Virus record (IMG/VR): IMGVR_UViG_3300036766_000988
Location: 186,001-250,000 of that record
Direction: 5' to 3' (one strand)
Length of the DNA: 64,000 nt
A model generated the notes under the pieces. It was not told the origin of the DNA. It was given only the letters and a program-made list of their open reading frames with translations, and did not search any database. The stretch's first letter is position 1. Each line of letters begins with the position of its first letter. The position numbers and the translations under genes were made by a program. Positions 15,240-62,767 of the stretch are shown here, in pieces.

Positions 15240-15270
15240 AGCGCGCACTACACCGAGGTATCGAAAGAAA

Positions 15271-16098
15271 TCAGAGATTGTCGAAGACGTCGTTGAAATC
15301 TTCCGTCGAGGGGTGTCCGGAGGGCGTATCAAGGAAATCGCGCACTTTAGCGTCGTCGTCGGCCTCTTGGGTCGCTTCCGCTTCAGGCTGCGAGGGGATT
15401 TCTTGAACGGGCTCGGGAGTAGGCTCTGGGGTGGATTCTGGGGAGGCTTCCTGGATGGCCTCAGAAGGAAGCTCTGGCGGGTCTTGGGCCTGTAGCTCTT
15501 GTGCCGTTTGCTCAGTTTCGAGCATGGCTGCGATCTCGTCTTCATTGACGTCATCGCCATCGAGCCCGAGAGGCCCCTTACCACTGCCGTTCGACTGCCT
15601 TTCGTGCCCAAACTGCCGCTCGTCGCCGTACATGGCACCGGAATCGATCTCGTCCCGGATAAGGGACCGTTGGAGCTTGATCTCGCTCATGGTCGAGGTC
15701 AGTTCCTTGTGCCGGTGCCGGACTGCCTTCTCGACGTACTCCAGGTCTTGTAGCTCGGCCTTGAGAGCAGTGATGGCGTTCAGGCTATCGCGTAGGATGA
15801 CGTTTGCCGTCGCCTTACGGTCCTCGATAGAGGGTAGGCGCCGGACCCGTTCGTCGTTGGCTAGAATCTCGACGAACGAGACTTCATGAGACGCTTCCTG
15901 GGCTCGCAACGCCCTCGATACGTCTTGCTTCTCTCGGTGGACTTCGATCTGAATGCGGCTCACCGCATTCAGAAAATTGCGGCATTCCGCGATGGTGTTC
16001 TGTAGGTACAGCGGCCCTAGTGAACGAGGGTCGGCTGCTAACCGGATCTCGTACTGCGTGATCTCGGTATAGATCTCTTTGACCCTCTCGATTTTCAC
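15271..16098 (-). CDS. helical/coiled-coil protein, possibly UvsY-like recombination mediator
   Basis: Helical N-terminal region plus acidic Pro/Glu tail; context only. Confidence 0.45.
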   Translation of the reverse strand: MKIERVKEIYTEITQYEIRLAADPRSLGPLYLQNTIAECRNFLNAVSRIQIEVHREKQDVSRALRAQEASHEVSFVEILANDERVRRLPSIEDRKATANVILRDSLNAITALKAELQDLEYVEKAVRHRHKELTSTMSEIKLQRSLIRDEIDSGAMYGDERQFGHERQSNGSGKGPLGLDGDDVNEDEIAAMLETEQTAQELQAQDPPELPSEAIQEASPESTPEPTPEPVQEIPSQPEAEATQEADDDAKVRDFLDTPSGHPSTEDFNDVFDNL

Positions 16099-16535
16099 TT
16101 GGCCTCACCCTCGCCGTTGCCGTTCCCATTGGAGCCGTTGTCCTGAAGCATCCGTGCGATGCCGTCGTCGTACGAGCCAAGGATCGCCCGCATCTCCTCA
16201 AGGGCCACCGCCTTCGGGGTGATTCCTCGCCGCATGACGTCTTCGTAGGTCGCCGCAACGACGTGCTTCGCGAGCAGGCTACGGATGAGCTTTACGTCTC
16301 TGGGAGCGAACCCGAGCGACTGCTTTTCCTCACCCATCGTCGGGATCTCAGCTCCCGTTCCACGGGACGCCGTGACCGAGTAGAACGCCGACTTCTTCCG
16401 ACCCGCAGGGTCACGATCCTCTATCGAGAAGGACACCGTGAGCTTGTCGAATTGGATGCTATCTTGGAGCTTCTTCAACCGCTCCGACTGTTCCGGCGTG
16501 AGGTTGCTCAGGGGGCTCTTTTTCTGCTCGTTCAT
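16095..16535 (-). CDS. hypothetical protein
   Basis: 146-aa ORF; GGTGTAT 9 nt upstream. Confidence 0.7.
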   Translation of the reverse strand: MNEQKKSPLSNLTPEQSERLKKLQDSIQFDKLTVSFSIEDRDPAGRKKSAFYSVTASRGTGAEIPTMGEEKQSLGFAPRDVKLIRSLLAKHVVAATYEDVMRRGITPKAVALEEMRAILGSYDDGIARMLQDNGSNGNGNGEGEAK

Positions 16536-18744
16536 GGCTCTTCAATACACCGGAAGTTGCTTGAATTGCTTCTGAAACGGCACGTCCGAAGGCCGTGTTT
16601 CGCTGCACTACCTTGTCGTTTGCAATAGCGGCTTGAACCGATGCGGGGTCGCCTAAAAGCCAGCACTTCTTCTTCGCACGGGTGACGGCAGTGTAGAAGA
16701 GGTTACGCTGCCGCATCCTTCCGTACGCCCTAACGAGTGGAAAGATGATCGTGTCGAACTCGGACCCTTGGCTCTTGTGTACGGTGATCGCATACGCAAG
16801 CCGGACCGTCTCGATGGCTTTGCTTTTGGGGATTCGGACGGGCATGTCCACCCCATCGAAACCGTGGATGCCGATCACGAGATCTTCACGGCCAATCGCT
16901 CGTATTTTCCCCATGTCGCCGTTGTAGACGTTCAGCTCGTAATCGTTCTTGGTGATCATCACTCGATCCCCAAGTCGGAAGTGGATCTTTCCGGCCTTCC
17001 ATTCGGCACTCCCTACATCGGGGTTGAGAGCCTCCCGCAACCGGTTGTTGAGGTTCGTGACCCCCACCACCCCATCGTACTTCGGGGAGAGCACTTGGAA
17101 GTTGGCGTCTCGGCTCTTGAGCTTTTCGGCCATCTTCACGATGAGGTCGCAAAGCATGCTTTCATCGGGGCAGTTGATGAACTGGAAATCCGATGTAGAG
17201 GGGCGAGCCTCAAGCGAGAGAGCTTCACCTCGGTTGATCCGGTGGCTCACCTGGACGATTTCGCTCTGCAACGCTTGCCGGAAGATCTGCGTGAGTCGAA
17301 CATGGGGAACCGTGTCACACGCGATGAGTTCCCGAAGTACGTTACCAGGGCCCACGGAGGGGAGCTGCGCATCGTCTCCGACGAGCACCAACATGGTGCT
17401 TGGATGTAGAGCATCGAGGAGCCGGTAGAACAGCTCCTGATCGACCATTGACATCTCGTCTACGATGACGGCCCCAACGGGGAACTTGTTGTAGCTGTTG
17501 AAGCCCCACCGGTCGCCCGTGTACCCCAGGGTTCGGTGGATGGTGGCCGCGTCCGAGCCCGTGACGGCCGCTAGACGCTTGGCAGCGATGCCTGTGGGGG
17601 CCATGAGGAGGTGGGTGACCCCTGTGGCCTTGAAGAGGCGTACGAACGTCTTCACGAGGGTGGTTTTGCCGGTCCCAGGAAGGCCGGTGAGAACCAGGAC
17701 CCGGTTGTCCACCAACAGCCGAACGCCGTCCCGTTGGGCATCCGATAGCTCGATGGCATGACCCTTCTCGTACTCCGCTAGAAATACAGCGAGATCGATG
17801 TCGAGCTTTGAAGGCTTCACGAAGCTGGCCAGCTTGGTCGCCCCATCACGCTCGAAACGGTAGAACTCGGGGAGGTAGACCCCTGCCTCCATGTCGAGCA
17901 CAAGAGCCTTGCTTGCGACGAGCCTATCGACAGCGTCCATGAGCGCCTTGAACATGTCATCTTGTTCGAAGGGCTCGATGTCTTCTTGCTGCATCATCTC
18001 GTCGAGTAGGGTCGGTAGATCCCCACGCCGGATGTAGAGGTGCCCTTGTTGGGCCTCTTGGCGAAGGATCCAGAGCACCGCTCCCTCGATGCGTCGAACG
18101 TCATTGGGAAGAATGCCGATCCGATGGGCTACTCTGTCTGCCCTGGCGAACGTGAATCCCTCGACCGCGATGAGGCGGTACGGGTTCTGTCCGATGATGT
18201 TGGTAGCTTCGAGCCCGAACGCCGCGAAGATCACTTTCACGATGTTCGAGTTGATGTCGTAATCCTGGAGGAAGACCGAGAGCGCGGAGAGGGAACACGC
18301 CGACTGCCATCCCATGATCGCTCGGTCCAACGTCATCCGCTTCGGATCTTCATCCGTGAAAAGACGCCGCAACTCGTCGGGGGCGTTCGATAGCTTGTCG
18401 TAGGCATCGAGCCCATAGAGGGTCACGAGGAGCTTCACCATCTCGGGATCCTCGAATCCCGATAGACAGTACGAGAGGAACCGCTCGACATCCGGCACTG
18501 TTTTCGCGTAGGGCTTCCATCCGAACGGCCGTACCTGTTTGCCGTACTTCGGATGCTCAACCCATTCCCCCACGATCCCTAGCGGGACACCCGACTTCAC
18601 TTGCACGAGTCCACTCAGGGAACCAGAGACCATGACTGTCTTCGAACGTGTCGCGGGCTCCGCTGCTTCGACACTCATTTCGAAGACTGCGAACCCTTCG
18701 TTCTGATGACGAATGTTCAGAACACGTCCGAAGAAGGTAGCCAC
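16459..18744 (-). CDS. recD2: RecD2-like SF1B helicase
   Basis: GLPGTGKTT, IVDEMSMVD, GDDAQLPSVGPG, YAITVHKSQGSEF; N-terminal HhH region. Confidence 0.9.
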   Translation of the reverse strand: MATFFGRVLNIRHQNEGFAVFEMSVEAAEPATRSKTVMVSGSLSGLVQVKSGVPLGIVGEWVEHPKYGKQVRPFGWKPYAKTVPDVERFLSYCLSGFEDPEMVKLLVTLYGLDAYDKLSNAPDELRRLFTDEDPKRMTLDRAIMGWQSACSLSALSVFLQDYDINSNIVKVIFAAFGLEATNIIGQNPYRLIAVEGFTFARADRVAHRIGILPNDVRRIEGAVLWILRQEAQQGHLYIRRGDLPTLLDEMMQQEDIEPFEQDDMFKALMDAVDRLVASKALVLDMEAGVYLPEFYRFERDGATKLASFVKPSKLDIDLAVFLAEYEKGHAIELSDAQRDGVRLLVDNRVLVLTGLPGTGKTTLVKTFVRLFKATGVTHLLMAPTGIAAKRLAAVTGSDAATIHRTLGYTGDRWGFNSYNKFPVGAVIVDEMSMVDQELFYRLLDALHPSTMLVLVGDDAQLPSVGPGNVLRELIACDTVPHVRLTQIFRQALQSEIVQVSHRINRGEALSLEARPSTSDFQFINCPDESMLCDLIVKMAEKLKSRDANFQVLSPKYDGVVGVTNLNNRLREALNPDVGSAEWKAGKIHFRLGDRVMITKNDYELNVYNGDMGKIRAIGREDLVIGIHGFDGVDMPVRIPKSKAIETVRLAYAITVHKSQGSEFDTIIFPLVRAYGRMRQRNLFYTAVTRAKKKCWLLGDPASVQAAIANDKVVQRNTAFGRAVSEAIQATSGVLKSHERAEKEPPEQPHAGTVGAVEEAPR

Positions 18745-18745
18745 G

Positions 18746-19024
18746 TCAGACCTCGCTCAAGTTGTCGGCACGGAACTCATCGATCGAGTGTCCGCCCATC
18801 TGCCAGAGAGCACCCTGGATAAAGCAGAGCCAGCGCACCGCCTTGTCGGGGTTCGCCACTGCGTTGTTCTTCGCTTCGATGACCATCCAGTAGAGATGCC
18901 CTAGGCTTTCGGCCTGAGAGGGATTGCGGCCATCGACCGGGAATCGAAACGGTCGGACCCCAGGCCTGAGTTCGAAGATAGCCGCGTAGCGATTGAGTGC
19001 TTTGATGATTTGGTCTGCGGTCAT
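18746..19024 (-). CDS. hypothetical protein
   Basis: MTADQIIKAL start with ATGA overlap and GGAG RBS. Confidence 0.65.
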   Translation of the reverse strand: MTADQIIKALNRYAAIFELRPGVRPFRFPVDGRNPSQAESLGHLYWMVIEAKNNAVANPDKAVRWLCFIQGALWQMGGHSIDEFRADNLSEV

Positions 19025-20943
19025 GACTCCACCATCTTGAGGAGATCGTCCTCGGTGATGCACTTCGTCCCGTTCTTGGCCGCTGCTTTGGCCTTCGTCG
19101 ATCCCGATGCGGGGTCCGCCATCACGAGGTACGTAAGCCCCTTGCCTACGCTGGTCTTCACGATCCCGCCGTGCTCGGCAACGATGGCTTCGAGGTCGCT
19201 TCGCTTCCGCACACTCTTGCCGGTAAAACAGAACGAAAAGCCAGTCAGGTTGCCCTGGATCGGGGCCTTGATCTTGACCCCGGCTTTGAGCATCCCCGGC
19301 ACGACAGTCCTGCCAACCTCTTCGACCCATTTCCAGAGGGCCTTCGCCTTGATCGGCCCGAGCCCAGGAACGGTCTCGAATTGCTGCTCGGAACAGCCTT
19401 GGATCTTCTCCCACGTGTCGTATCCAGCATCCATGACCATGCGGATTGTCGATGACGCGCAGAGCGGGATGGAGAGCGCCCCCAGAAGGGTTTCGAGCGG
19501 CAGCTCGTTCTTTTCCCAGAGGAGCCCGAGGAGCTTGTCTGCCAAAGTCTCGGTGATACGCTCGACTTCCGAGAGACTCGGGATGTTGAGCTGGTAGAGA
19601 TCGGCGGGGGTTTTGACCTTCCCGCTGGTCACCAAGCGCTCGATGAGGGTCTCCCCCCACTCCTTTACGTCAAGGGCCGCGATGTACCGCTGGATGCGCC
19701 CCATAGCCTGAGCAGGGCACCCGGCTGTGTTGGGACAGACGAGGTACTCCCCGTCGACCGTGAGGGCGGCTTTGCACGAAGGGCACTCTTCGGGAAAGTC
19801 GTAGTCCCCATCCGCTTCCTCGATCACCTGCGTGACCCTGGGGATGACATCGTTGGCCCGTGCCACCAGGATCCGGGATCCCACCAAGATCCCCAGGTCT
19901 TGGATGTACTTCATGTTGTAGAGGCTTGCGTTCGTGACCTCTGCTCCTACGAGCTGCACAGGATCGAACACAGCAACCGGCGTGATCCGACCCGAGCCCC
20001 CCACCTGCCAGAGGATGTCACGCAGGATCGTCTCACGAGCGACCGCAGCAAACTTGAACGCCACAGCCCCCTTGGGCCGCCCATCCTTCTCCCCGAGCGC
20101 GAGCTGCCGTTCGAAACTGTTGACGGAGAACACGAGCCCGTCGATGTCGTAGTTGAGCGTTTCGCGCATCCCCTCTTGGTAGTCCAATCGGATCGTCTCG
20201 GGAGTCGCCCCACCGGATTGCATCACGGTGACACATGAATTGGGGAGCTTGAACCCCTGGTGAGCAAGCCACTCGAATTGCTGCGCCTCGGTCGAGAAAT
20301 CCTTCCCGTCGGCTACTCGATAGAAGAGCACCGTCAAGTGCTCGCATCCCTTGCCGTCGTACCGCTTCGAGGTACCGGCAGCAGTGTTCCGTGTGTTGGC
20401 CTTGTCAGGGAAGTGCGCCGCATGATCCTGCTTCGTCAGGATGATCTCCCCACGAAGGCTTCCGGTGAACTTCTCGGGAAGCTGGGCCAGCACCCCCTTC
20501 ATCTTGGCGACGTTGGGGGTGATGTCCTCGCCCGTTGTCCCATCGCCACGCGTGATGGCTTGGGTGAAGACGCCGTTCACGTACCTGGCGTGGATCGAGA
20601 TCCCATCGAGCTTCTCGCTCATGAAGAGGGCCTCGATGTCGGAGATGCCGTTGCCCACAGCCCAAACCCCCAGCTCCTCGGGGGTGTTCACCTTGTCGAG
20701 AGAGCCCATCGGGATGCCATGCCGGACCTTCGGCCACTCCGAGGTGGCGGGTACGGGGGCGCCGATGGCCGTGACGGCAGGGGCATCTGCTTGCAGCTCG
20801 CGAAGCTCGTCCACCCAGGCATCGAACACTTCGTCGGTGGTCGTCGGGACCCCGTTGAAATAGTCGAGCCGAGCTTGGTTGATCTGGGCTTGGAGCTTTT
20901 GGATCCGAGCGTCGTTTGCCGCTGCCATCATCTCTTCGAGCAC
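19021..20943 (-). CDS. ligA: NAD-dependent DNA ligase
   Basis: SEKLDG, RGDG, DIDGLV, Zn finger CPSC..C..C, C-terminal BRCT (FCFTG). Confidence 0.95.
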   Translation of the reverse strand: MLEEMMAAANDARIQKLQAQINQARLDYFNGVPTTTDEVFDAWVDELRELQADAPAVTAIGAPVPATSEWPKVRHGIPMGSLDKVNTPEELGVWAVGNGISDIEALFMSEKLDGISIHARYVNGVFTQAITRGDGTTGEDITPNVAKMKGVLAQLPEKFTGSLRGEIILTKQDHAAHFPDKANTRNTAAGTSKRYDGKGCEHLTVLFYRVADGKDFSTEAQQFEWLAHQGFKLPNSCVTVMQSGGATPETIRLDYQEGMRETLNYDIDGLVFSVNSFERQLALGEKDGRPKGAVAFKFAAVARETILRDILWQVGGSGRITPVAVFDPVQLVGAEVTNASLYNMKYIQDLGILVGSRILVARANDVIPRVTQVIEEADGDYDFPEECPSCKAALTVDGEYLVCPNTAGCPAQAMGRIQRYIAALDVKEWGETLIERLVTSGKVKTPADLYQLNIPSLSEVERITETLADKLLGLLWEKNELPLETLLGALSIPLCASSTIRMVMDAGYDTWEKIQGCSEQQFETVPGLGPIKAKALWKWVEEVGRTVVPGMLKAGVKIKAPIQGNLTGFSFCFTGKSVRKRSDLEAIVAEHGGIVKTSVGKGLTYLVMADPASGSTKAKAAAKNGTKCITEDDLLKMVES

Positions 20944-20964
20944 GCGTGACCTCCGCTCCCTCTC

Positions 20965-20990
20965 CTACACCGGGGAGCGGAGGTGTTCAG
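20965..20990 (-). promoter_or_regulatory. bipartite promoter-like motif CTGAAC-N13-GGTGTAG upstream of ligA
   Basis: Exact motif and spacing repeated at other loci. Confidence 0.7.
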
Positions 20991-26379: not shown

Positions 26380-26383
26380 GTAG

Positions 26384-26490
26384 AAAAAACTCAGCCCCTC
26401 AAATCGCCCGCCCCGCCCCTTCGGTCCAGCGCTGTTCAGACGCTTAGACCGTCAGTTGAACACAGGAATCGGGCGGTTTGAAGGGCCGAG
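26384..26490 (-). ncRNA. putative structured ncRNA (element 4) with long terminal stem and U6 tail
   Basis: 21-bp closing stem CUCGGCCCUUCAAACCGCCCG/CGGGCGAUUUGAGGGGCUGAG (G-U pairs on minus strand), internal hairpin, UUUUUU. Confidence 0.6.
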
Positions 26491-26496
26491 AAACTT

Positions 26497-26603
26497 TGGT
26501 GGACACGATCGGGGTTGAACCGACAACCAGGGCTTTGGAGGCCCCAGCTCTACCCGTCTTGACAAGCGGCGCCGCCGGTCAAGACCTTGAGTCTTACGTG
26601 CCC
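26497..26603 (-). tRNA. atypical tRNA, anticodon CCA (Trp), G3-U70/A73, 30-nt D-loop insertion
   Basis: Acceptor GGGCACG/CGUGUCC-A-CCA, anticodon arm GGGGC-CUCCAAA-GCCCU, T arm GUCGG-UUCAACC-CCGAU. Confidence 0.85.
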
Positions 26604-26615
26604 GTGAACTGAGAA

Positions 26616-26795
26616 GCTCGTTCGCTCCCGTGGAGGGGCTGGCTACTCTCCAGCGTGTCGCAGGCGTATACGTTCATGACGCGCATCGTGTCTGCGAGCA
26701 AGAGGGTTGATCTCACGGCCGTAAGACCAACACCCTGGCTTTCGGCAGGCCCTCGCGGGCTCACCATCAAGCTGCCCTCCCGGCAACGAACGAAC
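26616..26795 (-). ncRNA. putative multibranched ncRNA (element 2), 180 nt
   Basis: Closing stem GUUCGUUCGUU/AGCGAACGAGC, GGAGGG/CCCUCC, GCCC-GCGA-GGGC tetraloop hairpin, UGGUCUUAC/GUGAGAUCA, UCGCAG/CUGCGA. Confidence 0.65.
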
Positions 26796-26796
26796 T

Positions 26797-26894
26797 GAAC
26801 CACAAGCAGGCGTAGATATGACCCACGCACTTCCAGCCTACACGGCGACTCCCTGGCAAGGGGGCGGTCTCCTTGATCCTACTGCTTGTGGTTC
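26797..26894 (-). ncRNA. putative structured ncRNA (element 1), 98 nt
   Basis: Perfect 13-bp terminal stem GAACCACAAGCAG/CUGCUUGUGGUUC starting 9 nt after the promoter motif. Confidence 0.6.
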
Positions 26895-26903
26895 GTAGTT
26901 TTA

Positions 26904-26929
26904 CTACACCGCTCGACCCCCAAGTTCAA
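26904..26929 (-). promoter_or_regulatory. TTGAAC-N13-GGTGTAG promoter-like motif upstream of ncRNA cluster
   Basis: Exact motif and spacing. Confidence 0.7.
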
Positions 26930-27231
26930 CCTTGCTTCGATACCAAGACCGCTTTCTCGTATGAGGAGCCGATCTTCGCGTACAGCTCGGCCGGAGAGAA
27001 CCCTGGCTCAGGGACCTCCCCTCGATGGGACGCTTCGGCCTTTTGGTGGCAGGGGTCACAGAGCGAGATGCCGTTCTCGGCGACGTAGCCACCGTTGGGC
27101 ATCTCAGTCCGATCGGTGATGTGGTGAGCATCAAGCGGTTGAGGAGCTGAGCAAACGCGACAGGCGTTCCGGTCCCTCTTGAAGACGGCCTCCCTAAACG
27201 CCTGTCGCACCTGCTTCTTGGTGTCACCCAC
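26926..27231 (-). CDS. HNH endonuclease
   Basis: VFKRD..CRVC...DAHHI...NGISLCDPCH. Confidence 0.85.
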   Translation of the reverse strand: MGDTKKQVRQAFREAVFKRDRNACRVCSAPQPLDAHHITDRTEMPNGGYVAENGISLCDPCHQKAEASHRGEVPEPGFSPAELYAKIGSSYEKAVLVSKQG

Positions 27232-27886
27232 CTTCGATCCTGTTCCGAACGGGCTTTCGGTCCTTCCAGTGCTCGTCCGTTTGAACGTGATCTTCGCGAA
27301 CCCACTTGGCCACGTAGTGGGGGAACATGGAGTCGGGCATGTCGCACTGGCGTCGAACCACCACCCCTTCACGAGTTTCGCCAACGTGGCTTGCCCCGAG
27401 GGCATGCCGCTCGACGAGCTTCTGAAGCTCCTTGTCGCTGTAAACGATCACGTTCCGTTCCAGAACGGGTACCGTGGGACACCCCACCAGATCGGCCCAC
27501 TGCTCGACCTCGGCCCAGCTAGCCCACAGGCACTTTCGGAGGTCGCAGACCCCAAAGACCATGAAGTAGGCGGGCAGCCGGTTGTAGCTGATTGTGTGCT
27601 GAGCCCAGAGCCACTCGCCGAAGATCTGCACCCCAGCCGGGATGCGGCTCCTGATGCACGCGTGCATGGCCTTGAGAGCGCTGAAACTTTGGTGGCGGGG
27701 TCGGCCAGCATGGGTGCGGGCGAAGACCGCCTCGTTCTCCAGGCAGACGTTCGAGCCGTCCATCTTCTCGGTCACCATGATGGGGGAGAAGAGCAGGAAG
27801 TCCGTGGACTCGATTCGCTTGTCATCCTTCGTGCAGCCGGGGCTGAACAAGAAATGACCTGTTCGGGGGTACTTGGGGGAGTCCAT
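27224..27886 (-). CDS. ATP-dependent RNA ligase family protein
   Basis: KYPRT, TEKMDGSN (motif I), FGE, EGVVVR, KWVR. Confidence 0.85.
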   Translation of the reverse strand: MDSPKYPRTGHFLFSPGCTKDDKRIESTDFLLFSPIMVTEKMDGSNVCLENEAVFARTHAGRPRHQSFSALKAMHACIRSRIPAGVQIFGEWLWAQHTISYNRLPAYFMVFGVCDLRKCLWASWAEVEQWADLVGCPTVPVLERNVIVYSDKELQKLVERHALGASHVGETREGVVVRRQCDMPDSMFPHYVAKWVREDHVQTDEHWKDRKPVRNRIEGG

Positions 27887-27905
27887 GACATGCCTCGTGC
27901 GGCTA

Positions 27906-27931
27906 CTACGCCACGGGTCCCCCAAGTTCAG
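27906..27931 (-). promoter_or_regulatory. CTGAAC-N13-GGCGTAG promoter-like motif
   Basis: Intergenic, upstream of RNA ligase. Confidence 0.7.
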
Positions 27932-27934: not shown

Positions 27935-29988
<2,054 letters not shown>

Positions 29989-31847: not shown

Positions 31848-33251
31848 TCAGTCTGCCCCCTTGATGTTGGCCACGGGGTACAACCGGTGGGCGACCCTAG
31901 CGATCTCCTCGGCTTCCAGAACCCCCAAGACCGAGTCGAGATCTTTGTAAACGTGAGCGCATTCGTCGAGCGGGATGTGGCGGTGGTTGCTCATGATGCC
32001 TTCGATGGCCACGCCGTTGAACGTACGCTTGACGTTGGCCATCTCGTCATCGATCCGCTGCTGCTTGTGTTCGAGGTCCCGCTTGGCCTTGCCCCGCGCC
32101 ATGATGCGGCCGGATCCGTGGTTGACCGAGCACGCCGTCCTGTAGGCATTCCGCTGCGGAAACAGGACTGCGGCACCCTCGTACATCGAACCGGGGATGA
32201 GGCAAGGGTGGCCGGTGGCCTCCCACGGGGTTCCCACCAGATCGGGATGTCCCGCCGGAAACGCGCGAGTGGCCCCCTTGCGGTGAACGAAGCCCTTCTT
32301 GGTCGTCCCATCGGGAAGGACGAGCGTCTCCTGCTGGACCAGGTTGTGGCTGATCTCGTAGTAGACCTGGACGTCCGATCCGAAGACTTCTTGCGTGGCC
32401 TCTCGAACTCCGTTGACGATGATGTGTCGGTTCGCGACAGCGAAGTTCGCAGCCGAGTTGTGGTGAGCCCAGTACTCCTTGCCGAGGGGCTCGTCCGCAC
32501 GGAGCCACGACTCCTCGCGCCGGTTGGCCGGGAGGTTGCGGACCTTCGCGCCTTCGTAGAAGAAGTGGTTGGCCGTCTGCCAGCCGTATCCGCGCGAGCC
32601 GCAGTGAACCATGATGAAGACCTCGCCCGAGTCGCGGTCGCACTGCATCTCGACGAAGTGGTTACCGCCGCCGACACTGCCGAGCTGGCCGATGACGCTG
32701 CCGTACGCCTTCTCGATCTTCGTGAGATCGGCGGTCTCGTCGACCGGGATGTACTGCCGCTCGCAGAGCCCAGCATCGACCCCGAGGGCCTTCGCTCCGT
32801 AGCGGAGGATCTCGTCGACCTGTTGCTTCTTGAACTTGGGCATCAGCTCCGGCCGGTTGTGTCCCTTGCCGGTTGCGATACGACGCTCGACCTCGGTGAC
32901 CCACTGGCGCCGACGTTCCTTGCTCTTCACGGAACCCGCGTTGAGGTTCGCCTTCATGTAGAGCACGCCGCACGAGATGTCGTAGCCCGAGCCGCCCTGG
33001 ATGATCGTGTTGTCCGTCACGATGACCGAGCCAACCGGAACGCCGTAGCCGACGTGGCAGTCCGGCATCAGGTACGCCCCGATCACCCCTTCGTAGGAAG
33101 CGCCGTCCGCGATCTGCTGCCAACAGCCTTCTTCGGAGGACTCGTAGAGAGCTTCCGAAAGGAAAGCGTGGGCATCTACCCGCATCTTGCCAACCTTCGG
33201 CAGGACGTAGTGGTTGTCGCGGACCTTCTGAACGGCGTACTTGAACGACAT
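31848..33251 (-). CDS. rtcB: RtcB RNA ligase
   Basis: MPDCH.GYG.PVG, GYDISCG, GGGNHFVE, HCGSRG, SHN, HRKGAT, PGSM, HGSGR. Confidence 0.95.
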   Translation of the reverse strand: MSFKYAVQKVRDNHYVLPKVGKMRVDAHAFLSEALYESSEEGCWQQIADGASYEGVIGAYLMPDCHVGYGVPVGSVIVTDNTIIQGGSGYDISCGVLYMKANLNAGSVKSKERRRQWVTEVERRIATGKGHNRPELMPKFKKQQVDEILRYGAKALGVDAGLCERQYIPVDETADLTKIEKAYGSVIGQLGSVGGGNHFVEMQCDRDSGEVFIMVHCGSRGYGWQTANHFFYEGAKVRNLPANRREESWLRADEPLGKEYWAHHNSAANFAVANRHIIVNGVREATQEVFGSDVQVYYEISHNLVQQETLVLPDGTTKKGFVHRKGATRAFPAGHPDLVGTPWEATGHPCLIPGSMYEGAAVLFPQRNAYRTACSVNHGSGRIMARGKAKRDLEHKQQRIDDEMANVKRTFNGVAIEGIMSNHRHIPLDECAHVYKDLDSVLGVLEAEEIARVAHRLYPVANIKGAD

Positions 33252-34378: not shown

Positions 34379-34646
34379 GGCCTACCCTACACCTCCTGAG
34401 CTTTCGAGGGCTGAAGAAAAAACGCAACAACCGACCCCTCTCAGGCCCATTACCAGTAGGGGGTTCGACACACCTCCCTTCGACGCTGCGAAGTATTTTC
34501 GACTGCCGCGAAGGATTTTGGCGCTTCCTCCACATAGGAGCGCTCGAAGTTGTCCCGAGAGCCTACGACCTGTCCCGTAAAGAACGGGGTTGTCGTCTTT
34601 CTTCGCTCCGACGTGAACGAAGTGGATCACAGGGGAGCATAACCCG

Positions 34647-38114: not shown

Positions 38115-38166
38115 GTGCCTCTCTTACTGATACACCGCCCCGAACGGTGTAGCGTAGCCACGTGAC

Positions 38167-41036: not shown

Positions 41037-41113
41037 GGGCCCTCATACACCGCTGCTCGAACGCAGTGGAGCGCGAGACGTACGAAATTCTCTTCGGTGG
41101 TGTAGGACAGGGC

Positions 41114-42138: not shown

Positions 42139-42426
42139 TCAGTGGTCCCCGGCGGGGCCCGCACGGTACCCAGAGGCGGTCACCCGAAGGAGGCCTGAAC
42201 CCTCCCATGTGAACTCCGGCACGATGGCGGTGAAGAAGATGACAGCTTCGCGGATCACCCGCGTGGCACCGGACGTGGCAGCGGCTGTACCAGGGTTCTC
42301 GATCCCGAGCGCCTTGGCTGCCGCCCTGGGGTCGAGGATGCGATCGATGGGTTCCCGCCAGTCTTTGGGGTTGCAGACCAGGTCGAAGGCCTTCTGGTAG
42401 GCAGCGCGGTCGGTTTCGTAGCTCAT
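42139..42426 (-). CDS. hypothetical protein
   Basis: ATG 7 nt after GGCGTAG. Confidence 0.65.
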   Translation of the reverse strand: MSYETDRAAYQKAFDLVCNPKDWREPIDRILDPRAAAKALGIENPGTAAATSGATRVIREAVIFFTAIVPEFTWEGSGLLRVTASGYRAGPAGDH

Positions 42427-42433
42427 GGGCCTG

Positions 42434-42499
42434 CTACGCCCGTCAAGGGACAAATTCAGCCGAAATTTAGATGCTGAACGTCCGGTTTCCAGGGCGTAG
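42434..42499. promoter_or_regulatory. back-to-back promoter-like motifs: CTGAAT-N13-GGCGTAG (-) and CTGAAC-N13-GGCGTAG (+)
   Basis: 42434-42459 on minus and 42474-42499 on plus, each 7 nt from an ATG. Confidence 0.72.
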
Positions 42500-42506
42500 T
42501 ACGGGC

Positions 42507-43798: not shown

Positions 43799-43824
43799 CT
43801 GAACCAGGCCTTCGGTTGACGTAG
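43799..43824 (+). promoter_or_regulatory. CTGAAC-N13-GACGTAG promoter-like motif
   Basis: Intergenic variant with identical spacing. Confidence 0.6.
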
Positions 43825-43842
43825 TGCTTGCCAAGGAACCAT

Positions 43843-44025
43843 ATGGTCAAGAAAGAGAAGATGATCCGGTTGGTGCTGACGCAGAAGCAAGCGGAGCGCC
43901 TGGGCATCGTCCGCTGTGAGTGCGGGCATCCGCCCAACAACCACTTCGATCATGACAAACGCCCGTGCGCGCACTGCAAATGCAAGGAATACCGGCAGGT
44001 CATCAAGCTCCCACCGAAGGACTAG
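43843..44025 (+). CDS. small Cys/His protein
   Basis: AAGGA RBS; CECGH...H...CAHCKC. Confidence 0.6.
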   Translation: MVKKEKMIRLVLTQKQAERLGIVRCECGHPPNNHFDHDKRPCAHCKCKEYRQVIKLPPKD

Positions 44026-44604: not shown

Positions 44605-44814
44605 GTGAACACCATCGTACAGAGTGATCGTGATGGACGACTGTTCGTCGAGGTGGACGACATCCGCTACACGGCCGATGATCTTCCGCCCGAGGGTACG
44701 GACGTCGAGGTCGAGCCCTATACGGGCATCAACGATTGTCGTTACGCCGACGTCACGTGGAGCGCCGAGACCCCGTCCGGCTACTGTGACACGACGGCCG
44801 AAGAGATCTGGTGA
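44605..44814 (+). CDS. hypothetical protein
   Basis: GAGGA RBS. Confidence 0.55.
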   Translation: MNTIVQSDRDGRLFVEVDDIRYTADDLPPEGTDVEVEPYTGINDCRYADVTWSAETPSGYCDTTAEEIW

Positions 44815-47487: not shown

Positions 47488-47614
47488 AACTGCTCTGTTT
47501 GACGGAGATCACCTAAACGAGCCTGTTCCCACAGTCTTCCCACAGGGTCTAGAGTGATAAACCGCTTATGGCCCGCGTGCCTACGGACCTACTTTTCTCG
47601 GTGTAATCCGTGGG

Positions 47615-47914
47615 ATGGCGAAGCCTGTGCAGTCCGACCTTCAGGTAACCCGAGCACTGCTCTCGATGGATGTGGGGAAGCTATCCCCAAGTGAAAAGCG
47701 CGCCTTCCAAGGGATGTACGACAACCTCATGGCAGGACAGATCATACGTCTCTCGATGCGGCAGCGAGCGTGGGCCGACGAGGTCTATGACAAGCACAAT
47801 CTCGACAAGGAGCGCCCGGCGGCGAAGAAGATCGCCATTCAGGACAAGTCGCTTCTACCCACGCACCCTCTCGATCAGCTACAGAGGCCGCTCAAGCCAC
47901 CGGGGAGACGGTGA
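47615..47914 (+). CDS. hypothetical protein
   Basis: GGTGTAA 8 nt upstream. Confidence 0.65.
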   Translation: MAKPVQSDLQVTRALLSMDVGKLSPSEKRAFQGMYDNLMAGQIIRLSMRQRAWADEVYDKHNLDKERPAAKKIAIQDKSLLPTHPLDQLQRPLKPPGRR

Positions 47915-49767: not shown

Positions 49768-50724
49768 CTACACCGCAGGGGGCATCGCGAAGGGCCTGTA
49801 GACAGGCTTGCCGACGAGACGGGTCAGGATTGCATCGAACCTGTCATGGAGGTCCCAGGCATCTCCGTGGCGGCATGCGGGGTCTTCCACCAGACACTCT
49901 TCGAGCAGCTCCCGCACTTGGCGCGGGACTTCGGTCGGCATCTGGTTCGTGAGCGGATGTCCTCCGAGCAGAGCTACGATGCACTTGGCGAGCATGTAGA
50001 GGTCGGTTGCCGGGCTCGGGATCCTCTTTGCCGTGACCTCGGGCGGGTAGTAAAGCCCATACTCGGGCGTGATCGCTTTGATGTGCCCCGGACCTGCGGG
50101 CTCTTCTTCGAGGATGATGTGGGTTTCGTCGTCCTCGTCCATGAGGCGAGCCCATGCAGTAGGCCGTTCGGCGGCCTTTTTCACAGGCTTCGGAGCCTTC
50201 GGGTCTTCCTTGAGCAGAACAGCGTACGACCAGTCGATGATCTTCCCCCCGTGTCCGATCGGATGCACGAGGATGTGGGGCGGGGTGATGTTGCCGTGAA
50301 CGATGTTCTTCTGGTGTACCCACCCGAGGACGACGAGTGCTCGCTTAAACATCCAGGCCATGTCCCGGTAGTCGATCCCCTGCGGATACGCGCGGATCAC
50401 GTCGGCCATCGAGACGTATTCAGCCGAGCCCGTTCGAGCTTCGGTATCGACCGCCTTGGCGAGGATGTTGTACGCCAGTCCTCCGGCCATCGTCCCGCTG
50501 GCGAGAAGCTTCGAGAGATAGCGGTAGAATTTCGTGTCGCTGGCCGTTGGGGGATAGAGCCGACGGAGCATCCTGGTCTCCGTCTGTACGAGGTCGTTGT
50601 CGGCCTTGTTTGCGGCGACCTTCACGATGACCGACGCGCCTTCGTAAGTACCCTCATAGAGGTTGCAAAGGTCGCCTTTCGGCAGCTCACGGGTGATGGT
50701 GACGTTTGGGATGACGGGCGGCAT
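49768..50724 (-). CDS. Ser/Thr protein kinase-like (possibly pseudokinase)
   Basis: VIVKVA, VHGNITPPHILV, IIDWS, YYPPE, TDLYML. Confidence 0.8.
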   Translation of the reverse strand: MPPVIPNVTITRELPKGDLCNLYEGTYEGASVIVKVAANKADNDLVQTETRMLRRLYPPTASDTKFYRYLSKLLASGTMAGGLAYNILAKAVDTEARTGSAEYVSMADVIRAYPQGIDYRDMAWMFKRALVVLGWVHQKNIVHGNITPPHILVHPIGHGGKIIDWSYAVLLKEDPKAPKPVKKAAERPTAWARLMDEDDETHIILEEEPAGPGHIKAITPEYGLYYPPEVTAKRIPSPATDLYMLAKCIVALLGGHPLTNQMPTEVPRQVRELLEECLVEDPACRHGDAWDLHDRFDAILTRLVGKPVYRPFAMPPAV

Positions 50725-50764
50725 GTCTTTATTTACACCGCTTCTCGTGGTGTAGAGATCCCTT

Positions 50765-51220
50765 ATGAAGCTTCCGATCACGTATCCGCTGGTCAAGGCT
50801 CGTCACCCCGAGGCCGTCAAGGACATCTTGACTAAGCTCAAGAAGGGTCGCTCGAAGGAACGCGGATCACGACCCCAAGATCTTACGTGGAATTACACAT
50901 GGGGGGTCCTTTGCGTGGAGGCCCACTTCGGAGAGCTGCCTACGGCCGAAGGTCGTGTTCAGGATATCCTCTCTCGTTGTCGGGTTGGTCTGGCGGCTTC
51001 GAAGGGCCGTTGGTACGAAATGGTGCCACTCGAAGGGGAGGTCCCGCCAGAGGTCCGAGAGATCTACGTGCAGGCCGAAAAGAAGCGGGCTGTGGAAGAG
51101 GCACGTGTCGCTGCGCTCACTCCCCAGGAGCGGGAAGAGGAGTTGCGCAAGCTCTTCGCATCCCTCAGTAAGGACCCTGGTTTCATGGTCATCGAGATTG
51201 GCCGTGAACGGGCTACTTGA
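50765..51220 (+). CDS. hypothetical protein
   Basis: GGTGTAG 9 nt upstream. Confidence 0.65.
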   Translation: MKLPITYPLVKARHPEAVKDILTKLKKGRSKERGSRPQDLTWNYTWGVLCVEAHFGELPTAEGRVQDILSRCRVGLAASKGRWYEMVPLEGEVPPEVREIYVQAEKKRAVEEARVAALTPQEREEELRKLFASLSKDPGFMVIEIGRERAT

Positions 51221-51545: not shown

Positions 51546-51769
51546 CCGTGACGCCTTTGGGCTCTGAGCTTCTCGATGACATCGGCGACCGATTTGCCGG
51601 TGACAATCGTGTGTTGGCCTCGGGTAACGATCCCAAGTTCCTCAGCTTTATCGTAACGCGTGTCGTGCTCCGCGTACTGATGAAGTTGCGCCGAGTACCC
51701 CTCGGGGCCTCGTCGGAGCGTGAGCACCCCGAGCACACCATCGGCGAGGAGAGCTTCGATCTCCTCCAT
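51542..51769 (-). CDS. hypothetical protein
   Basis: Stop/start overlaps on both sides. Confidence 0.6.
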   Translation of the reverse strand: MEEIEALLADGVLGVLTLRRGPEGYSAQLHQYAEHDTRYDKAEELGIVTRGQHTIVTGKSVADVIEKLRAQRRHG

Positions 51770-52014
51770 CAGACGACCGGCTTGAGACGTCCCTCGATGT
51801 AGGTGACGGCTTCCTGGACGGTGCGGATTTTTTCGGTGTCGTCATCGGGGATGTCCAACTCGAACTCCTCCTCGACGCCGAGCAGAATCTCGACCAGAGA
51901 AAGGGAATCGGCCCCGAGATCCTCGATGAGGTCGCTTTCGGGTTTGACATCTGCGTCCTCGACGTCGAGGTTGTCGGTCAAGATGCGTCGAAGCCTGCTG
52001 AACACGTCCGCCAT
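51769..52014 (-). CDS. acpP: acyl carrier protein
   Basis: EDLGADSLSLVEI...EEEF...IPDDD.EKI.TV.EAV.YI. Confidence 0.92.
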   Translation of the reverse strand: MADVFSRLRRILTDNLDVEDADVKPESDLIEDLGADSLSLVEILLGVEEEFELDIPDDDTEKIRTVQEAVTYIEGRLKPVV

Positions 52015-52156
52015 GTCTGAACGTACACCGGGGAGGGCATCTACGCGAAGGGTCAAGCATCCTTCGCATGTACTAGGGGAAAATTAGGATGATCCCCCCG
52101 AAGTCGGAGCGTAGAAGAACCGGGGTCTCTACATCAACCCCCACCGGAGACTGATC

Positions 52157-52453
52157 ATGTCTGGTCCGAACATCACCAAGGGTACGCGCATCCAGGCCAC
52201 GTGGTTCCAGGCCAAGCCGTTGGGGACCTGGGCGCTCGCGGGAGTCCAGATGAAGGTTACGGGGAGCTTCGTGACCGTGACCGGGGTCTGTCGGCACTTC
52301 CGGGGAGACGATCCGGTAACCCCCACGAAGATCAGGGTCTACATCGACCCCGATCCTGGCACTTGGGGTGGGCCAACCGTGCGCCCCATCGGGTGCTCGT
52401 GCGACCACCCTCATGTTGAGATCAACCCTGATCACATCGTCGCGGTGGTGTAG
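52157..52453 (+). CDS. hypothetical protein
   Basis: GGAG RBS. Confidence 0.6.
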   Translation: MSGPNITKGTRIQATWFQAKPLGTWALAGVQMKVTGSFVTVTGVCRHFRGDDPVTPTKIRVYIDPDPGTWGGPTVRPIGCSCDHPHVEINPDHIVAVV

Positions 52454-52456: not shown

Positions 52457-53296
52457 ATGATCGTGAAGATTGGTCGCCAAGAAGGCATCCCCTACTCCCT
52501 CTCCCGTTGGACGGACGTCCCAGCGGCGAAATGGGAGTGGATGATGGATGCCTTCAAGCAGCAGAAGATGGTCGCTTTCGATCCCAGGACGGCCATCCCT
52601 TCCGAGTGGTCGCTCAAGCCGGAAGACACGCTCGGGCTCTTGTTCTGGACGAAGGACCCGACGAACCTCATCACCGAAGCCGACCTGATCAAGCGTTACC
52701 GGCACAAGATCCACGTTACGCTGACCGGCTGGGAAGAGGTCGAACGGGGTGCGCCAAACCTCGCGTACGGGACCGCGCTTTTGGTCGATACGGTGGAAGC
52801 CTTCGGTCCCGCGAACGTCACCTGGCGGTTCTCGCCAGTGCCGCTGCTTCATCCTGATGAGATAGCCGTTCGCTTTCAGCACATCGCCTACCGGGCCGGT
52901 CTGGCGGGCCTTCGGTCGGTCTACCTGAGCTTCCTCCAGGCAAACGACCTCATGCCCGAGATGCGGACGCTCGAAGAGCGGCATCAGCTCCTCCGGCGAC
53001 TTGCCGACGTGGGAGCCCCGTATGGGATCCAAATCCGCCTCTGCAACGAGGACCGGCTCCTTGTCGGGGCTTCGACCTACCCGAACCTCGATTCTGATGT
53101 CTGTGCGCCCCCGAAAGACTTCGCTCTGCCGAACCGGGAAGCACCCCCCTCTGAAGGATGCGGTTGTGTCCTGATGGCTGATCCATTCACGGTCAACGAG
53201 ACCTGTACGATGGGGTGTCAGTACTGCTACGCCGCAGACGAGAACCTCTCTCCGAAGAAGCGGAACACGACCCGCAGCCTGCCGGTGATCCGATGA
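52457..53296 (+). CDS. DUF1848-family protein (C-terminal CxxxCxYC)
   Basis: SRWTDVPA, FWTKDP, WRFSP, GCGC, CTMGCQYCYA. Confidence 0.8.
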   Translation: MIVKIGRQEGIPYSLSRWTDVPAAKWEWMMDAFKQQKMVAFDPRTAIPSEWSLKPEDTLGLLFWTKDPTNLITEADLIKRYRHKIHVTLTGWEEVERGAPNLAYGTALLVDTVEAFGPANVTWRFSPVPLLHPDEIAVRFQHIAYRAGLAGLRSVYLSFLQANDLMPEMRTLEERHQLLRRLADVGAPYGIQIRLCNEDRLLVGASTYPNLDSDVCAPPKDFALPNREAPPSEGCGCVLMADPFTVNETCTMGCQYCYAADENLSPKKRNTTRSLPVIR

Positions 53297-60226: not shown

Positions 60227-60615
60227 AAGTTCTTGTGTGTGGGTCTAGGGATTGGACTGATCGTAAGGCGATTGAAAGGGAGTTTAAGAAGCTCCCACCT
60301 GGAACGATCATCGTTCATGGAGCATGCCCAACGGGAGCAGACGCTCTAGCAGATGCCGCAGCGATGAAGTTCGGATTCCAGATCAGGCGCTACCCTGCGG
60401 ACTGGGATGGCGAGCTGGCGGCTACGGGATCGGCCAAGGCAGCCGGGCCGAAGCGGAACTCGAAGATGATCCGTGAGGAACACCCGGACAAGGATGGCGT
60501 GCCGATCCACATGGGCCTTGCCTTTACGCTCGACCTCTCTCGCTCCCGAGGAACCAAGGACTGTACGGAGCGTGCCCGCAAGGCAGGCATCAAGGTCGAG
60601 GTCTTCTCGGTGTAG
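60223..60615 (+). CDS. SLOG-superfamily protein (DUF2493/YspA-like)
   Basis: VLVCGSRDW, IVHGACPTGAD, YPADW, AGPKRN, SRGT. Confidence 0.85.
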   Translation: MKVLVCGSRDWTDRKAIEREFKKLPPGTIIVHGACPTGADALADAAAMKFGFQIRRYPADWDGELAATGSAKAAGPKRNSKMIREEHPDKDGVPIHMGLAFTLDLSRSRGTKDCTERARKAGIKVEVFSV

Positions 60616-61411: not shown

Positions 61412-61413
61412 GC

Positions 61414-62248: not shown

Positions 62249-62271
62249 TCTACGCGTTCGTCGCCAGGGCT

Positions 62272-62550
62272 ATGATCGACCTCTTCTTTCACGCGGACTT
62301 GAACGGCATCACGTTTCAGCTCGACATCCCGTTCAAGGATCGCACAGCAAAGAAGCTGCCACGGTTCGTTTTCATGAGCTTGGACGCTCCACCTCTCAAG
62401 CCCCAGGTGATTGGGAAAGATCGCCTCTTCGCGGTCACCAGCATCCTCACTGGGCAGTCGATGCAGGCTGTCGGGCAGGAGGGCATCGGCGTGTATCGCT
62501 ACGTGGGAGACGGGCGTCGATTGATCTGGAAGGTGAAGGAACCATGTTGA
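62272..62550 (+). CDS. hypothetical protein
   Basis: 92-aa ORF. Confidence 0.55.
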   Translation: MIDLFFHADLNGITFQLDIPFKDRTAKKLPRFVFMSLDAPPLKPQVIGKDRLFAVTSILTGQSMQAVGQEGIGVYRYVGDGRRLIWKVKEPC

Positions 62551-62735
62551 AGCACATGACGGGCAAGCAGATCGCGCATCTTGCTGTAGGGTTGGGACTT
62601 CTTCTGAGCTTCGGCTTCGTTCTGTTGGCCGTCCTCATCCCCGAGGCCCGTTTGGGAGCTGCTTTAGGCGGGGGTCAGATTTTCATGGCCACAGCCGTCG
62701 GGTACGGGAAGTTCCGTCGCGCTGGGCAAGTCTGA
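62544..62735 (+). CDS. small membrane protein
   Basis: Two hydrophobic segments; AAGGA RBS. Confidence 0.55.
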   Translation: MLKHMTGKQIAHLAVGLGLLLSFGFVLLAVLIPEARLGAALGGGQIFMATAVGYGKFRRAGQV

Positions 62736-62767
62736 CGGTGTAGGGCCACCAAGACCGGGAGGTCCCT

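Follow-up and report, generated by a model that had tools for sequence, protein, structure and literature searches.

Putative promoters of two architectures, and candidate phage-encoded readers, in an uncultured huge phage

The phages phiEco32 and 7-11 redirect the host core RNA polymerase with a divergent sigma-70-family factor of their own: the middle/late promoters of phiEco32 consist of one element (tAATGTAtA), which gp36 reads and from which the transcription start site (TSS) lies 6–8 bp downstream, and gp47 of phage 7-11, a distant gp36 homologue, reads bipartite late promoters of the form GTAAtg-N16-aCTA (PMC8948821). Among jumbo phages, sigma factors without a phage polymerase have been described for one group, and “minimal” sigma factors with a single helix-turn-helix (HTH) as well as gp33-like factors have been reported (PMC7824862). 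What is known of huge phages comes almost wholly from metagenomes, and how they are regulated has hardly been read at all. Here we analyze 64,000 nucleotides (nt; “the window”), i.e., bases 186,001–250,000 of the 252,183-bp IMG/VR virus record IMGVR_UViG_3300036766_000988, in which a first-pass annotation had noticed a recurrent motif, YTGAAC-N13-GGYGTAG, and many further copies of GGTGTA alone. The contig has about 59% GC and is ~53% complete (CheckV), so the window is part of a huge phage. Judged from the DNA sequence, the motif is most likely the dominant promoter system of this uncultured phage.

Site alignment separates two classes. Class 1 is bipartite (consensus gGCTGAAC-N13-nnCGTAGTA), whereas class 2 (consensus cGGTGTAgnG) is a single -10-type element with zero information in the -35 region and none upstream of -1 relative to the hexamer. 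Two fixed elements around a non-conserved spacer (class 1), a lone -10-type element (class 2), and co-orientation upstream of transcription units, including those of non-coding RNA genes, are all as found in sigma-70-family promoters. About half a genome holds ~51 class 1 sites and ~70 class 2 sites, class 2 being the commoner. The first-pass annotation had proposed a regulon of a phage-encoded or hijacked alternative sigma factor. This was right in kind, given the promoter geometry, the presence on the contig of a divergent sigma-70-family protein (here P1) with a bipartite motif upstream of its gene, and the failure to detect RNA polymerase core genes or a T7-type polymerase on the contig; yet it merged two classes into one, and the sites form, instead of a small regulon, the dominant promoter system of the phage.

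Of the systems studied by experiment, the phiEco32 group comes closest. Like the proposed system, it depends on a divergent phage factor that redirects the host core enzyme; phiEco32, like class 2, uses a single TGTA-containing -10-like element without a -35, a related phage has bipartite promoters, and promoter sequence shifts as the sigma diverges among related phages. One difference from the phiEco32 group is the coexistence here of both architectures in one genome, with a shared -10 core. Further differences are those of scale (~77 kb in phiEco32 versus 230–530 kb here, with >100 sites per half genome, mostly predicted leaderless) and of protein make-up: unlike gp36, P1 has an inserted MerR-like winged helix and is accompanied by a very conserved protein with two sigma-4-like domains (P2), and where gp36-type sigma factors lack region 4, P1 appears to keep a C-terminal HTH. 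No sequence similarity of P1 to gp36 was detected.

Two motif classes and their sites

The eight bipartite sites first annotated are exact in coordinates, strands and variants (CTGAAT at 42434, GACGTAG at 43799), and their predicted enrichment over background is borne out: with ≤1 mismatch, the window holds nine matches against 0.20 expected from 100 dinucleotide-preserving shuffles, the largest of which gave 1. The ninth, a one-mismatch match at 52428-52453 (+) with CTGATC, has the behavior of a -10-only site. Exact matches number 18 across the 252-kb contig and 0 in a reversed control; a weight-matrix scan returns 51 class 1 sites versus 0 on the reversed sequence, and 44 of the 51 fall outside the genes as crudely called, i.e., in 18% of the contig. 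The class 1 spacer is N13 in 36 of 43 sites and N14 in three, with at most one site at each remaining length between 8 and 19. When spaced word pairs were counted without bias, TGAAC-N15-CGTA and its shifted versions were the most over-represented in the contig (32–39 observed, 1–2 expected). Across IMG/VR, the exact class 1 pattern gave 12 single matches, consistent with chance, and a literature search found no description of this motif.

That GGTGTA alone precedes many genes is equally clear. Within 60 nt upstream of gene starts, where 69 of its 170 copies lie, it is the most enriched of all hexamers, and when class 1 copies are set aside, 71 of 160 lie ≤100 nt upstream of a same-strand gene start, versus 3–11 for control hexamers of similar frequency. 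The three divergent GGTGTA pairs are present at 38131-38136(-)/38146-38151(+), 41046-41051(-)/41099-41104(+) and 50734-50739(-)/50749-50754(+). The bipartite sites had been described as always oriented toward a downstream gene, which is so for seven of the eight; the exception is 26904-26929(-). The sites are given below in window coordinates, with gene lengths in amino acids (aa); genes were called crudely, by codon usage, and single start codons may therefore be misplaced.

20963..20990 (-): class 1, CTGAAC-N13-GGTGTAGGA; before the NAD-dependent DNA ligase gene 19021-20943; ~22-nt leader with a GGAG-type Shine-Dalgarno (SD) sequence
26902..26929 (-): class 1, TTGAAC-N13-GGTGTAGTA; followed by ~400 nt without a convincing open reading frame (ORF), then a tRNA-like element
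27904..27931 (-): class 1, CTGAAC-N13-GGCGTAGTA; before a 220-aa gene 27224-27886, ATG 20 nt past GTA; top matrix score of the contig (36.4)
33258..33285 (-): class 1, CTGAAC-N13-GGTGTAGTA; RtcB gene (31848-33251), ATG 9 nt past GTA; predicted leaderless
42432..42459 (-): class 1, CTGAAT-N13-GGCGTAGCA; 95-aa gene 42139-42426, ATG 8 nt past GTA; divergent partner of the next site
42474..42501 (+): class 1, CTGAAC-N13-GGCGTAGTA; ATG at 42508, 8 nt past GTA (103-codon frame)
43799..43826 (+): class 1, CTGAAC-N13-GACGTAGTG; before a 60-aa gene 43843-44025; short leader with AAGGAA
44557..44584 (+): class 1, TTGAAC-N13-GGCGTAGCA; before a 69-aa gene 44605-44814, GTG 23 nt past GTA
38131..38151 (both strands): class 2, divergent pair, back-to-back; 439-aa gene 36795-38114 (-) and 153-aa gene 38167-38628 (+); leaders of 15–16 nt
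41046..41104 (both strands): class 2, divergent pair; 245-aa gene 40299-41036 (-) with GTG and 337-aa frame (+) with ATG, each 9 nt past GTA; predicted leaderless
50734..50754 (both strands): class 2, divergent pair with 9 nt between hexamers; 318-aa gene 49768-50724 (-), ATG 9 nt past GTA, and 151-aa gene 50765-51220 (+), ATG 10 nt past GTA
52447..52452 (+): class 2, with CTGATC at the -35 position; 279-aa gene 52457-53296, GTG/ATG 4–10 nt downstream
34388..34393 (-): class 2; 212-aa frame, ATG 9 nt past GTA
47600..47605 (+): class 2; 99-aa gene 47615-47914, ATG 9 nt past GTA
52024..52029 (-): class 2; 81-aa gene 51769-52014, ATG 9 nt past GTA
60609..60614 (+): class 2; ATG 9 nt past GTA (92-codon frame); overlaps the end of the upstream gene
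16546..16551 (-): class 2; 146-aa gene 16095-16535, ATG 10 nt past GTA
29633..29638 (-): class 2; 36 nt upstream of the GroEL-like gene 27935-29596
10561..10566 (-): class 2; 13 nt upstream of a 326-aa gene 9567-10547 in the replication/recombination module

The 9 nt between the hexamers of the 50734..50754 pair leave no space for separate -35 elements. Class 1 sites cluster before runs of small genes (contig 25–27 kb, 95–119 kb and 143–155 kb; window 42–45 kb) and also stand before the ligase gene, RtcB and the gene adjoining GroEL, while class 2 sites precede the genes for DNA polymerase, helicases, a methyltransferase and many others. Structural or late-looking regions (contig 1–20 kb; 0–140 kb of the sister phage G003, 312 kb and 59% GC) hold few class 1 or class 2 sites, and there may thus be a third type of promoter; since a terminase search, made to place the late genes, gave no match, the timing of the two classes is read only from gene content. 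The site at 26902..26929 may serve an RNA product: its transcript (window 26,380-26,900, minus strand) is a candidate non-coding RNA or degenerate tRNA. The tRNA-like element in it (26500-26559, minus strand) has a CCA end and no D-arm and scores 24 bits against Rfam tRNA, under the 29-bit cut-off; no known RNA families were found in the window.

Other promoter motifs were tried and dropped. Intergenic k-mer enrichment returned only the two classes and tRNA T-loops, and TATACGG was discarded as a third motif. A canonical sigma-70 reading fared no better, with 2 consensus matches against 3.4 expected in a scan of window 26–46 kb; the loose form TTGAC-N17-19-TAnnnn has only ~6 intergenic sites in the contig, without a common -10. 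One of the few canonical-looking sites, TTGACT-N16-TACTCT-N6-ATG, lies at contig 185,042 (-), ~960 nt left of the window, before a 290-aa gene just downstream of P2, and is a candidate leaderless host-type promoter.

Start-codon distance and predicted leaderless transcripts

The distance from the motif to the start codon is a feature that the first-pass annotation had missed. Long coding frames starting 8–10 nt past GTA numbered 43 in an initial count; by class, 33 of the 51 class 1 sites have a start codon 8–10 nt past GTA (mostly 8 nt), and 57–61 class 2 sites have one at 9–10 nt. Sigma-70-family factors start transcription 6–9 nt past the -10 element, which places the transcript start at or beside the start codon, and most transcripts would, with start sites predicted in this way, be leaderless. 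Some sites have leaders of 20–40 nt with their own SD sequence, e.g., those of the ligase gene and the P1 gene, and others precede genes that encode no protein: the tmRNA gene has a class 2 site 20 nt upstream, and in two sister phages class 2 sites lie 7, 28 and 42 nt upstream of tRNA genes.

So fixed a position next to start codons could also belong to a signal other than a promoter, such as non-SD ribosome recruitment, termination-reinitiation or a stoperator-like operator. Besides the very constant 8–10 nt, this is favored by the complementarity of GGTG to part of the anti-SD sequence, by the 21 of 61 class 2 motifs that supply the TAG or TAA stop of an upstream open frame (...V-stop, e.g., the “...PV-stop” of P3, a gene discussed below), and by the translation-related genes for which huge phages are known (here 54 tRNAs and a tmRNA). 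We nevertheless consider it very improbable, because the rigid -35 spacing, the SD-bearing leaders, the sites before RNA genes and the remoteness of GGTG from the ATG all favor transcription over translation. Specifically, only GGTG could pair with the anti-SD, and it lies 11–12 nt from the ATG, too distant, while the invariant TA of the motif cannot pair at all; other genes of the sister phage G001 (IMGVR_UViG_3300017991_000048, a complete genome of 398 kb, 48% GC) have an ordinary AGGAG at -12 to -9. A -35-type hexamer at a rigid 13 nt has no translational role, nor does a motif before tmRNA and tRNA genes or an ORF-free stretch, and at divergent back-to-back pairs no gene lies upstream that could terminate. 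The stop-codon overlap, moreover, is seen at only 2 of 51 class 2 sites in G001, which suggests packing economy and not motif function.

Examples of the overlap are window 60,609-60,614 and contig 94,646-94,653, where the promoter-like motif of one gene lies inside the final codons of the gene before it. Cluster K mycobacteriophages have start-associated sequences that include a ribosome-binding site, and the stoperators of Cluster A are repressor sites. Those motifs resemble the present ones in being short, asymmetric, present in many copies, oriented with transcription and close to gene starts. The motifs described here differ from them in having a -35 partner at fixed spacing, in standing before RNA genes and in lacking correctly placed SD complementarity.

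Candidate readers of the two classes

A search of the contig for a sigma factor, as the first-pass annotation had advised, led to P1 (290 aa; contig 135,002-135,874, minus strand), whose assignment as a sigma factor has moderate support. In its family, 8 of 11 members match Sigma70_r2 (best E 5e-8), and one homologue bears the JGI label “sigma24 family.” The AlphaFold model (predicted local distance difference test score 74.6) consists of a sigma-2 domain with an inserted domain of ~80 residues (67–145) and a short C-terminal helical HTH, and only sigma-2 domains are among its top structural matches, with E. coli sigmaE (6jbq_F, Z 6.6) first and SigI, sigma32 and sigma70 next. The model also matches (Z 5.1) a chain of the gp79/phiEco32 complex 9m7y, presumably the phage sigma. 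Family members differ in their C-terminal HTH but have an unchanged NHFANFCRTR, the counterpart of regions 2.3–2.4. The inserted residues 67–145 find their best structural matches in the winged-helix DNA-binding domains of the MerR family, CarH and RacA (Z about 5); if modeled correctly, this winged helix might make an extra DNA contact. No anti-sigma factor was recognized.

The region upstream of the P1 gene holds TTGACA-N18-TACGAA, then GCTGAAC-N13-CGCGTAGTAG, then a ~30-nt leader with GAGAGGA. Both elements are kept in the relatives L035 and L044 (P1 58–59% identical); L045 (P1 46% identical) has GCTGAAT-N13-GGCATAGTA, and the P1 gene of G003 has TTGATC-N13-GGCATGTA, i.e., the dialect of that phage. 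The sigma gene is accordingly preceded by its own target promoter type, as in the autoregulation of ECF (extracytoplasmic function) sigma regulons. Directly downstream of P1 lie ~970 nt (contig 134,031-135,001; L009:1-783) without a plausible coding-strand ORF. In relatives, this position is occupied by P3 and a methyltransferase gene, which here are 40 kb away, and the locus has likely been rearranged in this phage.

We hold it fairly probable that promoters of this huge phage share one sigma-2 specificity, come in two architectures and have P1 as their reader. The phage-encoded sigma-70-family P1 would redirect the host RNA polymerase core, its sigma-2 domain reading a -10-like element GG-Y-R-TA with the best form cGGTGTAg. 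Where this element is optimal it would suffice alone, giving class 2 (~70 sites), and because no -35 is needed there, back-to-back divergent pairs become possible. The variant element nnCGTAGTA would be aided by the -35-like hexamer CTGAAC exactly 13 nt upstream, giving class 1 (~51 sites), and CTGAAC would be read by a sigma-4-like domain, most simply the variable C-terminal HTH of P1. Transcription would start 8–10 nt past GTA, at most sites on the A of the ATG, and produce leaderless mRNAs in no need of an SD sequence. Because a TTGACA site and a class 1 site both precede the P1 gene, host sigma would prime P1 through TTGACA-N18-TACGAA, after which P1 would amplify itself and switch on the remaining genes. 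P1 fits this model because it has a conserved sigma-2 core, a variable C-terminus and an autoregulatory layout, and is present throughout the clade.

One specificity in two architectures has a parallel among primary sigma factors, for which a strong extended -10 works without a -35 and a weaker -10 works with one, a flexibility exploited by the Thermus phage P23-45; transcripts of Thermus phages are often leaderless. The promoters here differ in that GGTGTA has no conserved T at -7 and in that the proposed reader is phage-encoded.

Several points weigh against P1 as the single reader. The P1 of this phage scores 18.6–18.8 bits for Sigma70_r2, under the Pfam cut-off of 24, and its VIA Z-scores of 5–6.6 are in the range that the tool calls possibly non-specific; a whole-model Foldseek search gave no significant E-values, and a profile search of PDB sequences with P1 gave no match. 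Sister phages carry further sigma-2-like ORFs, this phage possibly has a third sigma-like gene in P3, and the contig is only about half of the genome, so that the assignment of P1 to either class is not exclusive. P1 is ~30% identical between phages with an identical GGTGTA element. If class 1, with its early-looking small genes, needs P1, there would be very few host-type promoters to start with. Two details of the motifs are left unexplained, namely the G (not A) of class 1 at the position equivalent to -11 and the 1–2-nt difference in GTA-to-ATG distance between the classes. Finally, a search of public runs found the sequence in one DNA run only, which is probably the source sediment metagenome, and no RNA run holding the phage; RNA runs surfaced only through unrelated GroEL-like words.

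P3 itself (272 aa; contig 94,646-95,464, minus strand), which adjoins P1 in relatives, was rejected as a sigma factor. Four close members have no Pfam match and hhalign against P1 was not significant; the only support is the homologue in G003, which at 23.5 bits for Sigma70_r2 is nearly at the cut-off.

The low identity of P1 across phages with the same GGTGTA brings in P2 (212 aa; contig 185,119-185,757, minus strand), encoded in the clamp-loader operon 243 nt beyond the left edge of the window. P2 matches Sigma70_r4 (4e-14) and has a second HTH; its domain 1 superposes on sigma-4 domains with TM-scores of 0.8–0.86 and a root-mean-square deviation of 0.9–1.7 Å, and across the clade it is 65–90% identical, with the recognition helices of both HTHs invariant. 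P2 is probably part of the same promoter-reading apparatus, and its invariant helices fit the invariance of GGTGTA at least as well as P1 does. There could, then, be two readers, with P2 reading or being required for GGTGTA (either in the role of a minimal sigma or by binding the duplex at -16 to -11 as an activator) and P1 reading class 1 only. The close likeness of domain 1 to sigma-4 domains and the minimal sigma and gp33-like factors reported in jumbo phages (PMC7824862) both favor P2 as reader, and the position of P2 in a replication operon beside the clamp loader recalls the clamp-coupled late transcription of T4. We regard this division of labor as unlikely all the same. P2 shows no detectable sigma-2 domain, and melting of DNA in the way known for sigma factors would thus be beyond it; class 1 and class 2 overlap in their -10 elements, with GGTGTAGTA found in 10 of 27 class 1 sites of this phage and 9 of 9 aligned sites of the sister phage G015 (412 kb, 44% GC), which suggests one reader for both; the 20-kb surroundings of P2 are motif-poor; and P1 is clade-wide to the same extent as P2.

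T4 late transcription uses the sigma-2-like gp55, the flap binder gp33 and the clamp gp45, with TATAAATA at -10. The shared features are a -10-only class, a split or reduced sigma apparatus, and a small sigma-4-like or flap-directed protein encoded among replication and clamp genes; group 2 jumbo phages have been described as users of factors of this kind (PMC7824862). By contrast, the motif (GGTGTA) is unrelated, class 2 precedes genes for replication, metabolism and RNA and not recognized structural genes, and neither P1 nor P2 matched gp55 or gp33 in PHROG and Pfam searches.

Two side observations concern P2. A similar conserved N-terminal peptide, (V/G)IPxDxxxLxxx(F/Y), is found in P1 (residues 10–23; P0001) and P2 (residues 11–22; P0014), and might be a shared docking motif for RNA polymerase or a common partner. 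In G001, a 409-aa ORF (38,175-39,197, plus strand) contains two P2-like segments (37% and 25% identical) and is a fused or duplicated paralogue of the sigma-4 protein.

A reader supplied by the host, i.e., the primary sigma of an unusual lineage or a hijacked ECF factor, could recognize one or both classes and leave other promoters, e.g., late ones, to the phage factors. In this case the early-looking small-gene clusters behind class 1 would be expressed, as expected, before any phage protein is made; the -35 variants TTGAAT, TTGATC and CTGAAC resemble TTGACA with 17 nt from the -35 hexamer to TA, the motif of this phage resembles ECF promoters such as that of B. subtilis sigmaW, and the site-poor structural and late regions leave room for a third class read by phage factors. 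We judge a host reader improbable, because the signature GGTGTA-N9-ATG spans 22 phage records of 44–69% GC, for which a single common host is unlikely, and because the T that primary-sigma promoters conserve at -7 is missing. Class 1 also has G at the A-11 position, its dialects are exclusive between phages of equal GC and track P1 divergence, and the P1 gene has a separate canonical TTGACA site besides its class 1 site.

Dialects in related phages and the content of the contig

Sister phages keep the architecture and change the sequence. The class 1 forms are CTGAAC/GGCGTAGTA in the present phage (G000), CTGAAT/GGCATAGTA in L045, TTGAAT/GGTGTAGTA in G015 and TTGATC/GGCATA in G003, and N13 spacing occurs in every lineage. 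In G003 (P1 30% and P2 65% identical), class 1 reads TTGATC-N13-GGCATA-N8-ATG (N13 in 34 sites and N14 in three, among them one before the P1 gene of G003), and the forms of G000 and G003 exclude each other; class 2 has the same architecture as here, with 47 cases of ATG at 9–10 nt. G015 has TTGAAT-N13-GGTGTAGTA-N6-ATG. GGTGTA is again the top upstream hexamer in G001, with ATG at 9–10 nt. No class 1 form could be extracted there because coding repeats dominate the spaced-pair statistics, namely periodic ACAGG, CCGGT and CCTGT repeats at 13–14-nt offsets, probably from coding sequence that is repetitive (collagen-like?). Four relatives keep the class 2 site upstream of the N6/N4 methyltransferase gene despite diverged flanks.

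The first-pass annotation had compared the motif, with its AAC...CGT elements, to ECF-sigma promoters. B. subtilis sigmaW reads TGAAAC-N16-CGTA and E. coli sigmaE reads GGAACTT-N16-TCAAA. The likeness holds in this lineage, close relatives included, which has a -35 with AAC, a -10 with CGT(A), a rigid spacer and a sigma gene behind its own promoter type; P1, too, is like an ECF sigma in pairing a sigma-2 domain with a short C-terminal HTH. It does not extend further, since in sister phages the shared architecture comes with TTGATC-N13-GGCATA or TTGAAT-N13-GGTGTAGTA, so that the ECF appearance is not a defining property. The AAC-to-CGT spacer of 15 nt is also 1–2 nt shorter than usual, a -10-only class is atypical of ECF factors, and P1 differs from them in its ~80-residue insertion in sigma-2 and in having no identified anti-sigma.

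Among 22 P2-encoding huge-phage records (44–69% GC), GGTGTA-N9-ATG occurs 354 times versus 21 in a reversed control. P2 is present in 22 of 22 and a P1 relative in 20 of 21, including all seven complete genomes. Counts of the motif in 20-kb P2 neighborhoods (53 contigs) were uninformative, because the P2 region is promoter-poor even in motif-positive phages. More tentatively, these patterns may reflect a clade-wide, host-independent grammar (phages of 230–530 kb and 44–69% GC; at least 22 records and hundreds of metagenomic P2 homologues), in which a universal GGTGTA would be read by P1 sigma-2 together with P2, mRNAs would be leaderless, and a lineage-specific -35 would co-evolve with the C-terminal domain of P1. 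We see this as possible but doubtful.

A grammar readable from sequence would reveal the transcription units and correct start codons of hundreds of genes without assigned function, of which many, being leaderless, would be mis-started by standard gene callers; if it is clade-wide, promoters, operons and start codons would become directly predictable across unannotated giant genomes. It also points to the phage proteins that may capture the host polymerase (P1, P2 and possibly P3) and offers a testable case of sigma–promoter co-evolution, in which the -10 core and 13-nt spacer are kept and the -35 differs by lineage. Should the assignments hold, lineage-specific pairs of P1 and -35 would be orthogonal sigma–promoter parts for expression. 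Leaderless transcripts, along with the 54 tRNAs and the tmRNA, suggest that the phage depends less on host-specific signals of transcription and translation, an idea that bears on how phages of this kind could span hosts.

No cultured relative turned up in the phage collection: INPHARED gave no match by megablast, P1 had none by tblastn, and the DNA polymerase of the contig is ≤34% identical to that of an uncultured 485-kb phage. Scanning bacterial genome contigs with P2 for a host returned only contigs of metagenome-assembled genomes (MAGs) labeled Parcubacteria, Lentisphaeria and Alphaproteobacteria, which are probably mis-binned huge-phage DNA. Two of these contigs carry P2 homologues 57% (L085, JBAZMT010000153.1, from a MAG labeled Parcubacteria) and 37% (L086, JBAZJM010000002.1, Lentisphaeria) identical to that of this phage.

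The window encodes replication and repair proteins (clamp loader, clamp, RecA/UvsX-like protein, RecD2-like helicase and the NAD-dependent ligase) as well as ribonucleotide reductase, the GroEL-like chaperonin and RtcB; genes for a family A DNA polymerase, a DnaB-like helicase and the methyltransferase lie elsewhere on the contig. Its RNA genes comprise the 54 tRNA genes, which cover all amino acids, the tmRNA and an amber-suppressor-like tRNA. These RNA genes lie at contig 62,869-88,477, outside the window (loci L028 and L029), and at L026:16908-16981, all on the minus strand, and the tmRNA encodes the tag ANDNSTALPALLAA. The amber-suppressor-like tRNA has the anticodon CUA and is labeled Pyl by ARAGORN.

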